64,000 nucleotides of DNA from positions 2,542,001 to 2,606,000 of the forward strand of contig OZ251224.1 in NCBI GenBank assembly GCA_965240325.2. The letters are read 5' to 3'. This DNA comes from Rebecca billardiae RCC1528 (taxonomy: Eukaryota; Protista; Haptophyta). The notes under the pieces were generated by a model, which was not told the origin of the DNA, searched no databases, and worked only from the letters and a program-made list of their open reading frames with translations. A program made the translations under genes and the position numbers. Each line of letters opens with the position of its first letter. The first letter of the stretch is position 1. This document shows positions 3,850-56,349 of this stretch, piece after piece.

Positions 3850-4644
3850 ATGGATGAAACCAGCGCCTCGGTGAAGCTGCTTCAGCGCAGATCGGCGCGA
3901 GGTGACGCGCGTGCCACGCACATTCTGGCTGGTCGCTTTGCACGCGGAGACGGTGTCGCTCAGAATGTGAGCGAGGCAATGCGCCTGTGGCACATCGCCG
4001 CCGAACGTGGGCTTGCCGACGCTCAGTTCAAGCTTGCCGGCCTTATTTACCAGGGTCAGTGCGGCGCGGGACGCGATCTCATTCAGGCGGCGCGCTGGTA
4101 CCGGCTGGCGGCCGAGCAGGGCTACGCACGGGCGCAGTGCAACCTGGGCTTGTGCTGCGAGAACGGCGAGGGCGTGCCGCAGGATATGGCCGAGGCGGTG
4201 CGCTGGTACCGGCTGGCGGCCGAGCAGGGCCTTGCAGCTGCGCAGTACAACCTGGGCGTGTGCTGCGAGAAGGGTAAGGGCGTGCCGCAGGATATGGCCG
4301 AGGCGGCGCGCTGGTGCCGGCTGGCCGTTGATGGTGATCAGCCACATGCTCATTCCATGCTTGGACTGCTAATGCTGGTAGGCCAGGGCGTGGAGCGCGA
4401 TGTGGTGGAGGGCGTGCGGCTGCTGCGCCGTGGGCACGAGCTCGACAGCACTCTCGACCCCTGTGAAGTGCTCATCGCCGGGTTTGCGGGGGATCGCGAG
4501 GTGATGTCCAAGTGCTGCCTCATGTGTGCCAAGACGGACCGTTGCACCTTGAAGAAGTGCGACCGATGCCACGTGGCGGTGTTCTGCTCGCACGACCGCC
4601 TGCGCCTGGCTTGGAAGGCGCACAAGCCGCACTGCAACGAATAG
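3850..4644 (+). CDS. Sel1-like repeat protein (5 repeats) with C-terminal MYND-type zinc finger, paralogue 1
   Basis: 36-aa repeats AQxxLGxCxxxGxGVPQDxAEAxRWYRLAAEQG. C-terminus CLMC...CDRC...FCSHDR...WKAHKPHC. Confidence 0.9.
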   Translation: MDETSASVKLLQRRSARGDARATHILAGRFARGDGVAQNVSEAMRLWHIAAERGLADAQFKLAGLIYQGQCGAGRDLIQAARWYRLAAEQGYARAQCNLGLCCENGEGVPQDMAEAVRWYRLAAEQGLAAAQYNLGVCCEKGKGVPQDMAEAARWCRLAVDGDQPHAHSMLGLLMLVGQGVERDVVEGVRLLRRGHELDSTLDPCEVLIAGFAGDREVMSKCCLMCAKTDRCTLKKCDRCHVAVFCSHDRLRLAWKAHKPHCNE

Positions 4645-5545
4645 CGTCGGACCTGCTGCGAGGCCTGACGACGATGTATCGTCAGCTTCGTTGTCGTGAT
4701 TTTGACAACTTCAGTCATCAGAGTCATCATGATGGCGCAGATGTCGGAGTATACTGAGGCCCGGCACCGTTCCGCCCGCGTTCGGGCGGCAGCTTGACTG
4801 GTAACGCGACCTGGTCCCGCTCTGACGAACTCGCCGCCGCCGACGGCCCGACGGAAACGGGGAAACCGTCGTCGGATTCGGACTCATCATTGGATCAGAG
4901 TCATCAGATTCAGAGTCGGATCACCGTGGTCGTCATCGTCAGAGCCATGTCAGAGTACTGCTGACGATGCAACCCTACAACCGGTGTGCCCGGCCTCAGA
5001 TGATTGTGCAGCCTGCGGCATGGTGTTTGGCCAAGCGGCGCTGCGGCGACCGTTCAGCCACCGTAGGTTCCAGCGACAGGCGAATTATTAAACATGGGGT
5101 GGCGCATGAAGTTGACTATGGTGCTTGATGCAAGCTAAAGTTATGGCTTGCGCACGTACACCAGTCCCCGCCTCTCCGCTTATGCATATGCTGTCCATGA
5201 ATGGTAAGCCATGCCATTGTCCCACGGCGCGTGACGCGGTCCCCAACGAGGCGCTGTGCGCGCTCGAAGCCGGGGATGGCCAGACAGTACTACTCGCGTG
5301 ACCCAGCGCGAAGGATAGCTGCAGCGCCGATGTGATGGCATGAGCGCGGCCTACCAGCGTCGGCGGCCGATGGGCAGCCGCCATGCTGATCGAAAAAGGC
5401 CGCCCCTGAACCTCATAAGAATTTCCGGGAGCGGCGGCGGGCCGGCGGCGGCGGCGGCTGCCAGGCGGCCGAACCGGGCAAACCATACCAGTGACGACGC
5501 AATGACGAGGCACAGCGCCACAGCGGGGAAGCTCAGCCATCATCA

Positions 5546-54167: not shown

Positions 54168-54549
54168 CACAGTATACCGATTACCGTACTCTGCTACGCG
54201 AGGCAACAGCGGCTTCTAAGCCTAACCGCCAGGCTGCCTATGACACCAATCACCATTGCTGTACATGAATGAATAGAAGGAGACCAGCTGTCCAAGGTAA
54301 CATTCTGAGACGCTCCAAGTCTGAGATACCGCCCTTGTCTGAGCAGATGACATCAAGAGACAGAGTGACTGGCAACTAGTCAGTGATCGAGTCGCTGTCG
54401 GGCAGTCGGCTGTCCGGATGAGTCCGGTCGCCCGGCGGGTCCCGCTGCTCCAACTGTCGTCTTCGCGCGGCGGCGGGGCAACTCTCCGCCAGGTCGAGGG
54501 CGGCAGCGCACCGTGCGCCTCGACGGGGAAGAAGGAGCCGCGCGCACAG

Positions 54550-56349
54550 ATGGACGAAACCAGCGCCGCGGTAAAGCTGCTTCGGCGCAGGTCGGCGCGA
54601 GGTGACGCGCGTGCCACGTACCTTCTGGCTGATCGCTTTGCACACGGAGACGGCGTCACTCAGAATCGGAGCGAGGCGATGCGCCTGTGGCACATCGCCG
54701 CGGAACGTGGGCTTGCCGACGCTCAGTTCAGGCTTGGCGCTCTTCATTACCATGGCGAGTGCGGACCGACCCGCGATCTGATTAAGGTGGTGCACTGGTA
54801 TCGGCTGGCGGCGGAGCAGGGCCACGCAGGTGCGCAGCACAGTATGGGCTTGTGCTGCCGTGATGGCGCGGGCCTGCCGCAGGACCAGGCCGAGGCGGCG
54901 CGCTGGTACCGGCTGGCGGCGGAGCAGGGCCACGCACGGGCGCAGTTCACCCTAGGCAGGTGCTGCGAGACGGGCGAGGGCGTGCAGCAGGATATGGCAG
55001 GGGCGGTGCGCTGGTACCGGCTGGCGGCCGAGCAGGGCCACGCAGATGCGCAGTACAACCTGGGTGTGTGCTGCGAGAAGGGCACGGGCGTGCCGCAGGA
55101 TATGGCCGAGGCGGTGCGCTGGTACCGGCTGGCGGCGGAGCAGGGCCACGCACGGGCGCAGTTCACCCTAGGCAGGTGCTGCGAGAAGGGCGAGGGCGTG
55201 CCGCAGGATATGGCAGAGGCGGTGCGCTGGTACCGGCTGGCTGCCGAGCAGGGCGACGCAGCCGCTCAGTTCTACCTGGGTGAGTGTTATCGTGAGGGCG
55301 AGGGCGTGCAGCAGGATTGGGCCGAGGTGGTGCGCTGGTTCCGGCTGGCGGCAGAGCAGGGGCTCGCGATAGCGCAGCACAACCTGGGCGTGTGCTACCA
55401 GGAGGGCGATGGAGTGCCGCAGGATTGGGCCGAGGCGGCGCGCTGGTACCGGCTGGCAGCCGAGCAGGGCGACGCAGATGCGCAGACCAACCTGGGCATG
55501 TGCTGCGAGAAGGGCGAGGGCGTGCCGCAGGACTGGGCGGAGGCTGCACGCTGGTATCGGCTGGCGGCCGAGCAGGGCCACGCACATGCGCAGAGCAACC
55601 TGGGCTGGTGCTACGACGTGGGCGAGGGCGTGCCGCAGGATATGGCCAAGGCGGTGCGCTGGTACCGGCTGGCGGCTGAGCAGGGCGATGCAAGAGCGCA
55701 GCACAATCTGGGCTTGTGCTATAACGAGGAGAGCGAGGGCGTGCCGCAGGACCGGGCGTCAGCGGCGCACTGGTTCCAGCGGGCGGCCGAGCAGGGCCAC
55801 GCCGGCGCGCAGGTCAACCTGGGCATATGCTGCCAGAATGGCGCGGGCGTGCCGCAGGATATGGCCGAGGCGGTGCGCTGGTACCGGCTGGCGGCCGAGC
55901 AGGGCCAGGCACGGGCGCAGAGCAACCTGGGCAGATGCTGCCATTATGGCCAGGGCGTGCCGCAGGACTGGGCGGAAGCGGCGCGCTGGTACAGGCTGGC
56001 CGCTGAAGGTGATGAGCCACTCGCTACGTCCCAGCTTGGACGGCTGATGCTTGCGGGCAAGGGCGTGGAGCGCGATGTGGTGGAGGGCGCGCGGCTGCTG
56101 CGCCGAGCACACGAGCTCGACAGCACTCTCGACCCCTGTGAAGTGCTCGTCGCCGAGTTTGCGGGGGATCGTGACGTGGTGTCCATGTGCTGCCTCGTGT
56201 GCGCCAAGACGGACCGTCGAGCCTTGAAGAAGTGCGACCGATGCCACGTGGCGGTGTTCTGCTCGCACGAGCACCTGCGGCTGGCGTGGAAGGCGCACAA
56301 GCCGCACTGCATACATACATCGCTAATATTGCGCCGGGCAGCCTGCTAG
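54550..56349 (+). CDS. Sel1-like repeat protein (14 repeats) with MYND-type zinc finger, paralogue 3
   Basis: Start MDETSAAVKLL; tandem 108-bp repeats; C-terminus CLVC...CDRC...FCSHEH...WKAHKPHC. Confidence 0.9.
   Translation: MDETSAAVKLLRRRSARGDARATYLLADRFAHGDGVTQNRSEAMRLWHIAAERGLADAQFRLGALHYHGECGPTRDLIKVVHWYRLAAEQGHAGAQHSMGLCCRDGAGLPQDQAEAARWYRLAAEQGHARAQFTLGRCCETGEGVQQDMAGAVRWYRLAAEQGHADAQYNLGVCCEKGTGVPQDMAEAVRWYRLAAEQGHARAQFTLGRCCEKGEGVPQDMAEAVRWYRLAAEQGDAAAQFYLGECYREGEGVQQDWAEVVRWFRLAAEQGLAIAQHNLGVCYQEGDGVPQDWAEAARWYRLAAEQGDADAQTNLGMCCEKGEGVPQDWAEAARWYRLAAEQGHAHAQSNLGWCYDVGEGVPQDMAKAVRWYRLAAEQGDARAQHNLGLCYNEESEGVPQDRASAAHWFQRAAEQGHAGAQVNLGICCQNGAGVPQDMAEAVRWYRLAAEQGQARAQSNLGRCCHYGQGVPQDWAEAARWYRLAAEGDEPLATSQLGRLMLAGKGVERDVVEGARLLRRAHELDSTLDPCEVLVAEFAGDRDVVSMCCLVCAKTDRRALKKCDRCHVAVFCSHEHLRLAWKAHKPHCIHTSLILRRAAC

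Follow-up and report, generated by a model that had tools for sequence, protein, structure and literature searches.

Three intronless genes within a 64,000-nucleotide stretch of the genome of the haptophyte alga Rebecca billardiae RCC1528 (GenBank assembly GCA_965240325.2, contig OZ251224.1, positions 2,542,001 to 2,606,000 of the forward strand; this whole stretch is called the window hereafter) belong to a family of at least ~130 genes on ~25 contigs, whose products join a tandem array of Sel1 repeats to a C-terminal MYND-type zinc finger. We consider it fairly probable that this family is a lineage-specific expansion of single-exon genes encoding recombining Sel1/MYND protein-interaction adaptors, presumably cytosolic or nuclear, with a modestly diversifying groove.

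A preliminary description, read from the letters of the window, had placed three intronless paralogues at 3850, 12927 and 54550, with 2, 8 and 11 internal 108-bp repeats between shared end repeats and a MYND finger. Open reading frames (ORFs) were confirmed on the + strand at exactly these positions:

3850..4644, + strand: g1, Sel1/MYND gene, single ORF of 264 aa, the shortest of the three; N-cap 3850-4122, two internal units 4123-4338, C-cap and linker 4339-4512, MYND finger 4513-4635
12927..14408, + strand: g2, Sel1/MYND gene, single ORF of 493 aa from a conserved MDESS start; N-cap 12927-13199, eight internal units 13200-14072, C-cap 14073-14180, linker 14181-14246, MYND finger 14247-14369
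54550..56349, + strand: g3, Sel1/MYND gene, single ORF of 599 aa; N-cap 54550-54822, eleven internal units 54823-56013, C-cap 56014-56121, linker 56122-56187, MYND finger 56188-56310

All three genes follow one plan, in which two divergent N-cap repeats precede the internal Sel1 units, one divergent C-cap, a linker of ~22 residues and the C-terminal MYND finger. Parsing at each W[YF]RLAA motif gave two (g1), eight (g2) and eleven (g3) internal units of 36 residues (108 bp), including an off-length unit of 39 residues in g2 (its last, with a 3-residue insert) and one of 37 residues in g3. Tandem Repeats Finder placed the 108-bp arrays at 4085-4325 (2.2 copies), 13172-14059 (8.1) and 54785-56000 (11.2), bearing out the same repeat numbers. 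Pfam Sel1 (PF08238) matched 3, 10 and 13 stretches in g1, g2 and g3 (E = 4e-39, 4e-105 and 7e-136), so that all three lie, with their tandem ~36-residue units, above the curated cut-off of the Sel1-repeat family. The N terminus MDE[TS]SA.VKLL.RRSARGDARAT is common to them, as are C-cap, linker and finger. The shared caps and finger were accordingly recovered in every gene, with a reservation for g1, whose finger scores 18.9 bits for zf-MYND (PF01753), under the Pfam cut-off of 22.7 that g2 and g3 exceed with 28.6 bits each. The genes are unbroken ORFs, and so are most of their neighbours; intronlessness is therefore normal at this locus. The ~55 nt directly 5' of the ATG (3795-3849 in g1, 54495-54549 in g3) are conserved in the subfamily of this contig (designated C5), including the family loci L007, L033, L037 and L031, and are absent from g2. 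This leader ends in CACAG immediately before the ATG and could be a 5' untranslated region (UTR) or the splice acceptor of an intron within it, so that a 5' UTR intron may be present.

The genome (72 Mb, 41 contigs, with the window at C5:2542001-2606000) yielded 158 matches with g2 as query and 130 matches (E <= 4e-23) to the tail of C-cap, linker and MYND finger, a segment present in one copy per gene. None of the 130 tails contains an internal stop; ~123 lie in open frames of at least 248 aa and ~7 in open frames below 200 aa, the latter probably being fragments. They are spread over ~25 contigs, C5 carrying 26 of them, 14 within 2.27-2.73 Mb around the window. For the family-wide analyses, 50 loci were fetched, from which 57 of the ~130 genes were parsed, with 503 in-register internal units; L024_+2922, a shortened duplicate of the L012 gene, was left out of later analyses. 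The parsed genes carry between 2 and 22 internal units and all start with the same charged, non-hydrophobic N terminus MDETSAAVKLLRRRSARGDARAT. The genome-wide count proposed in the preliminary description thus revealed a large and expandable family. As a separate observation, zf-MYND domains are much expanded throughout this genome: a first look gave 264 candidates, all of the 150 scored exceed the Pfam cut-off, and many of the best scorers lie outside the Sel1 family.

In the Pfam register, the unit reads hAdAQynLGvCYekGeGVPQDmAEAvRWYRLAAEQG. The scaffold consensus given earlier proved correct, and the residues listed for the position after LG (L, V, A, M, W, T, R, E, I) match the 21 internal units of the window exactly. 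Across the 503 units of 57 genes, positions 1, 3, 6, 7, 10, 13, 14 and 22 are hypervariable, with entropies of 2.3-3.65 bits, and most other positions remain below 1 bit. The eight variable letters form 454 distinct combinations among 497 units. An AlphaFold2 model of g2, calculated with an alignment of 14 colinear paralogues (mean predicted local distance difference test score, pLDDT, of 91), is a continuous helix-pair solenoid built of regular pairs of ~13-residue helices; in this model and in Foldseek comparison g2 displays the antiparallel helix pairs, stacked as a superhelix, of the Sel1 fold. In the model, helix A spans unit positions 2-14 and helix B positions 22-34. Six of the variable positions (3, 6, 7, 10, 13 and 14) share one face of helix A, and adjacent cysteines (CC) or a CY pair occupy positions 11 and 12. 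The entropy of helix A has a helical moment of 0.52, a value reached by only 14 of 10,000 permutations; the variable residues are thus arranged as a single stripe, with the conserved packing face on the other side of the helix, in agreement with the single helix face proposed from the residue spacing.

Foldseek matched g2 to Sel1 proteins of solved structure, namely 6ok3 (E = 6e-28), 4bwr/EsiB (2e-26), 8sxq, LceB, LpnE, HcpC and SEL1L, with 6ok3, 4bwr and 8sxq as the best matches. 6ok3 is a Sel1 protein of Oxalobacter, 4bwr is EsiB of E. coli, and LceB and LpnE come from Legionella. In LceB, the first helix of each repeat lines the concave face (10.1101/2023.07.03.547437).

Whether the fixed scaffold with its variable positions is peculiar to the alga was judged against bacterial Sel1 proteins. 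The best matches of g2 were sought among 5.8 billion proteins, and the 120 best hits served as control. They are bacterial proteins in which a Sel1 array is joined to a kinase, caspase-like or trypsin-like domain, 46-60% identical over most of g2, and none of the 120 carries a MYND finger. The same profile extracted 1,075 units from them, with a consensus (approximately xAxAQxxLGxxYxxGxGVPQDxxEAxxWYRLAAEQG) that is nearly that of the algal units. In the bacterial units, too, all eight of the positions that are hypervariable in the alga rank with the most variable (2.9-3.9 bits). The residue alphabets are alike as well, with D/H/N/Y at position 1, F/Y/N/C/S at position 6 and L/V/W/A at position 10 in both groups; position 22 differs. 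Per-position entropies of alga and bacteria correlate with a Spearman coefficient of 0.77 across proteins and 0.81 within proteins. Since the control shares consensus and variable positions, a fixed scaffold with variable x positions is largely generic to near-consensus Sel1 arrays and not special to this alga. As far as can be judged from sequence comparison, the pattern reflects the binding face of the fold and no immune-specific mechanism. Choosing the control by similarity to g2 favours a common scaffold; the shared variable positions are not explained thereby. The superhelical fold is the same as well (template modeling score, TM, by query of 0.77-0.81 for 6ok3 and 4bwr). The bacterial proteins differ in carrying enzymatic or secretion-related domains and no MYND finger, and the alga has ~130 paralogues. 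Specific to the alga are an extra freezing of positions 16, 19, 20, 23, 27, 30, 31 and 34, the MYND fusion and the copy number. As a consequence, a fixed scaffold with hypervariable x positions should not on its own count as an immune signature.

The variable positions are set apart from the scaffold by their rates of change. A maximum likelihood (ML) fit (GY94+F3X4, fixed tree) to 15 colinear paralogues, the eight-unit genes, gave a nonsynonymous to synonymous rate ratio (dN/dS, omega) of 1.69 for the variable codons, compared with 0.30 for the scaffold, 0.34 for the N-cap, 0.65 for the C-cap, 0.70 for the linker and 0.085 for the MYND finger. Fixing omega at 1 worsened the log-likelihood (lnL) by 8.04 units (2dlnL = 16.1, p ~6e-5). 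Counting of nonsynonymous (pN) over pooled synonymous (pS) proportions along a minimum spanning tree of 481 unit pairs resulted in 2.17 for the variable codons (bootstrap 2.03-2.33) and 0.39 for the rest, while counting over the 15 colinear eight-unit genes with pooled dS gave 2.5 for the variable codons, 0.32 for the scaffold, 0.28 for the MYND finger, 0.60 for the N-cap, 0.75 for the C-cap and 1.17 for the linker. A spanning tree on scaffold codons only returned 3.3-5.2 for the variable codons; this value was not used, since such a neighbour choice minimises pS and biases the ratio upward. The flank divergence of tandem duplicates, tried as a neutral yardstick, gave inconsistent values and was dropped. 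In the codon tables the second base changes and the third is kept, e.g., GCT/GAT/GTT/GGT at position 3. The signal of diversifying selection at the eight positions is thus real but modest, accompanied by strong purifying selection on the finger. With regard to the site-wise analysis that the preliminary description had called for, change at the variable positions somewhat outpaces that at synonymous sites (omega 1.7-2.5), and the constancy that it had ascribed to the finger is reflected in its very low omega.

The finger follows the pattern C-x2-C-x10-C-x2-C-x5-C-x3-H-x7-H-x3-C, all eight ligand positions being invariant in 33 aligned paralogues, and family tails genome-wide score 30-39 bits for zf-MYND. 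The canonical MYND finger is of the C4-C2HC type with Cys as the sixth zinc ligand; in the algal family this ligand is His (C5H2C). In g1 (4606-4620) an Arg replaces this otherwise invariant His, giving CSHDR instead of the CSHDH of the 33 paralogues. Together with its possession of two units only, this suggests that g1 may be decaying. MYND fingers of other organisms bind proline-rich, PxLxP-type motifs of their partners.

A repeat-level comparison provided evidence of array turnover. The nearest relative of a unit lies in the same gene in 41% of cases, compared with 1.9% expected by chance, which speaks for local duplication or homogenisation. Within g3, units 2 and 4 are identical at all but 4 of their 108 bases, and their likeness points to internal duplication or conversion. 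For 17 of the 20 scored units of the window, the nearest relative was found in another gene, at a different position. Exchange between loci is less firmly established. In a tree of the N-caps, g1 and g3 group with L033, L037 and L038, and in a tree of the tails with g2, L002 and L018; the N-cap data reject the tail grouping of g1 (approximately unbiased, AU, test, p = 0.0008), this being the single significant result among four AU tests. From these sequence comparisons we regard such exchange as likely. The very low synonymous distance between g1 unit 1 and units of distant paralogues, considered as a further sign of exchange, was discarded because this unit is near-consensus, which explains the value better.

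Taken together, these data lead to the following model. A Sel1-like alpha/alpha superhelix, modelled here for g2, is joined by the ~22-residue linker to a C-terminal MYND-type finger. The solenoid groove, lined by helix A, would bind a protein or peptide ligand, and the conserved finger would dock the resulting complex onto a common partner, by analogy with the PxLxP binding of other MYND fingers. Unequal or ectopic recombination among the 108-bp units, inside a gene and probably also from one gene to another, would alter their number and order, as is partly evident from the unit comparisons. Each unit has eight positions that accept many residues, and six of these lie on the exposed side of helix A. 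As the variable positions evolve modestly faster than synonymous sites, the paralogues probably diverge in the ligands they bind.

A number of points weigh against this adaptor model. The omega values are modest, the site class was picked after its variability had been seen, and recombination can inflate such tests; at a third-position GC content (GC3) of 0.81, selection or biased conversion on synonymous sites could furthermore depress dS. The placement of the variable stripe along the groove is inferred from helix periodicity and published Sel1 structures rather than from measured surface exposure. Classical MYND binding is assumed for a finger with His instead of Cys as its sixth ligand. 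Three of the four AU tests for chimerism, the reciprocal or additional ones, were not significant (p = 0.15-0.33), and the groups had been named after the trees were seen. The intracellular location is bounded by an inspection by eye, without a predictor, of the N-terminal sequences of the parsed genes, in which no signal peptide or membrane segment was seen.

Several of these points would be shared by a near-neutral turnover of the family, in which duplication and unequal crossing-over generate the arrays, the eight positions are merely unconstrained and the paralogues are largely redundant scaffolds. An omega above 1 would then arise artificially from depressed synonymous rates, recombination and the choice of sites after the fact. 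We rate this explanation as rather unlikely, while recognizing what favours it: unrelated bacterial proteins vary at these very positions, omega reaches only 1.7-2.5 and changes with the method (rising to 3.3-5.2 under the biased neighbour choice), GC3 is high, the linker and the C-cap are fast too (omega 0.65-0.70), and g1 looks degenerate, with two units and the finger His lost. However, the variable codons outpace even the presumably unconstrained linker (pN of 0.50 compared with 0.30), and the likelihood ratio test rejects an omega of 1. Substitutions often alter the second codon base and leave the third intact, and ~123 of the 130 tails have stayed in long open frames despite a synonymous divergence between subfamilies of up to 0.5. 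We retain the diversifying adaptor as the preferred reading.

The preliminary description had gone further and proposed a candidate algal immune or recognition system. In this interpretation the Sel1 arrays, diversified in the germline, would act inside the cell to sense viral or bacterial proteins and the MYND finger would be a constant signalling adaptor, functionally comparable to the repeat domains of fungal and brown-algal proteins resembling NOD-like receptors (NLRs). The large family, the variation in repeat number, the recombining array, the 454 distinct variable-position words and an omega above 1 confined to the face of helix A all fit such a repertoire. The evolutionary regime resembles that of fungal NLR repeats (PMC4986451) and of the Ectocarpus NB-ARC-TPR genes (Zambounis et al. 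2012, PMC3341825), with which the algal family shares solenoid repeats, high internal conservation, repeat-number variation (2-22 units among paralogues), a likely exchange of repeats and a few binding-face codons per repeat with omega > 1, the last being subject to the caveats on recombination and post-hoc sites. It differs from both in lacking a NACHT or NB-ARC NTPase and an N-terminal effector, in using Sel1 instead of TPR, ANK or WD repeats and in having no link to allorecognition or defence; in Ectocarpus, moreover, each repeat has a separate exon, which is not the case in the algal Sel1 genes. The fungal NLR class shows an internal repeat conservation of at least 85% (Dyrka et al. 2014, PMC4986451), a level which the within-gene unit identity of 74% overall (67-72% in the window genes) stays below and which is reached on the 28 scaffold positions only (86%). 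In g1, g2 and g3, Pfam detected only Sel1 and zf-MYND above threshold, with no NTPase (NACHT, NB-ARC), STAND NTPase, TIR, death-fold, HET or other effector or signalling domain, and caps, units, linker and finger account for the whole proteins. Variable positions and alphabets are also generic to bacterial Sel1 arrays, as set out above, and MYND fingers are not known to serve as immune signalling modules, which further counts against the proposal. We thus consider an immune-like repertoire clearly improbable. A shade less credence still is given to its most specific form, a germline-encoded, recombining Sel1-groove repertoire of haptophytes that would sense pathogen (e.g., giant-virus) proteins inside the cell, signal through a shared MYND-docked partner and so be NLR-like without a STAND NTPase.

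Further comparisons place the adaptor reading among known repeat families. SEL1L is single-copy, luminal in the endoplasmic reticulum (ER), membrane-anchored and has degenerate repeats. ZMYND12 combines TPR and MYND and thus likewise joins helical repeats to a MYND finger, with a different repeat type and domain order. Hcp proteins are secreted and bacterial, with disulfide-bonded cysteine pairs, and are encoded by fewer than ten genes. SEL1L/Hrd3 of the HRD1 ligase in ER-associated degradation (8ket, 9og0, 5b26) resembles the proposed arrangement in that a Sel1 solenoid serves as substrate or cofactor adaptor on a constant machine; its structural overlap with g2 is only local (TM 0.30). The Helicobacter pylori Hcp/SLR family (Ogura et al. 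2007, PMC1941758; HcpC 1ouv) is a multi-gene Sel1 family within one genome with a matching fold, for which positive selection was reported. Unlike these, the algal proteins have a charged N terminus without a signal peptide by eye, adjacent cysteines (CC or CY) in place of a disulfide pair per repeat, and a MYND end. Green algae harbour MYND-rich, species-specific families (PMC13126933), which share the lineage-specific expansion of MYND-containing proteins and differ in repeat types and domain order.

Carriage of the copies by a transposon or an endogenous giant-virus segment, for which the single-exon, dispersed and numerous genes and a Ty1/copia element in the window could be quoted, is highly improbable, given that flank similarity occurs in only 97 of 1,485 upstream and 17 of 666 downstream pairs and is limited to recent tandem duplicates and a ~100-nt leader, that the neighbours are ordinary host genes and single-exon too (encoding an LSMT-like protein, a cyclophilin, a triose-phosphate transporter, MnmA/SufE and eIF3d), and that the element lies 11 kb from g2 and is unrelated to it:

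~25750-32523, - strand: Ty1/copia-type retrotransposon, with an RVT_2 ORF at 26029-28275 and a gag-like ORF with zinc knuckle at 29332-31950; its long terminal repeats are marked by identical 43-bp tandem arrays at 25750-25872 and 32401-32523

Relatives outside this genome were sought in several collections. A word-sharing search found no relatives of the tail, and the metagenome contigs of the Joint Genome Institute (JGI) gave no match to it; short-read assemblies probably collapse such repeat genes, so that both results say little on other species. In an exhaustive profile search, P0162 was the sole whole-tail match among the best 150, long bacterial Sel1 arrays having swamped the list as the profile included the C-cap. 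P0162 was rejected as a relative from another species, its contig being 100% identical to the present genome at C5:256293-258895. It corresponds to L053 (C5:254793-260395), a divergent in-genome paralogue of 490 aa and 42% identity to g2, with the same N terminus, C-cap, linker and MYND finger and with degenerate, non-homogenised Sel1 repeats, and may be close to the ancestral form. Among the matches listed, it was the sole family member found in the public protein collections searched. Its contig, which terminates in a dispersed repeat and includes ~900 nt 5' of the gene, looks genomic and hence gives no indication that the gene is expressed. In the ESM Atlas, at least 23 eukaryotic clusters are auto-named 'Sel1 repeat/MYND finger domain-containing protein', Haptophyta being the commonest phylum among the few members with a recorded phylum. 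The architecture therefore exists beyond this genome, as uncharacterised fragments only. Our literature search found no paper joining Sel1 or MYND with haptophytes or related algae.

The upstream regions of the three window genes share a short motif:

3742..3750, + strand: motif CCAACGGTC, 107 nt 5' of the g1 ATG
12900..12908, + strand: motif CCAACGGTC, 26 nt 5' of the g2 ATG
54450..54458, + strand: motif copy with one mismatch, CCAACTGTC, 99 nt 5' of the g3 ATG

Its core CAAC[GT]GTC, which by its letters resembles a Myb-type site, occurs 26-173 nt 5' of the ATG in 25 of 55 family genes; two further genes have it near -300 and -363, and 37 downstream flanks contain no copy. As a family-specific element CCAACGGTC was rejected, since good copies were also found at genomic sites away from any family gene, and at one mismatch it showed no enrichment within the window. 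CAAC[GT]GTC may thus be a general promoter element.

Three further features of the window were recorded in passing. A perfect (CT)46 microsatellite lies at 14545-14636, 140 nt 3' of g2, and the same repeat is present downstream of its closest paralogue L002. An ORF of 1,692 aa (19661-24739, + strand) encodes TPR_12/TPR_10 repeats and a protein kinase domain; with seven 126-bp units of 91% identity (20512-21396) it is a second solenoid gene of the window with high internal repeat conservation. A long ORF at 50876-53878 (+ strand), a putative gene model, contains an extreme Gly/Phe-rich stretch (GGFGGGGGG repeats, 51560-51940) followed by a more ordinary segment.

If the paralogues of the Sel1/MYND family truly differ in ligand specificity, they would amount to a naturally occurring collection of groove binders built on one shared adaptor, and the family would then be a candidate for a part in the host-virus or host-bacterium interactions of algae that matter ecologically.

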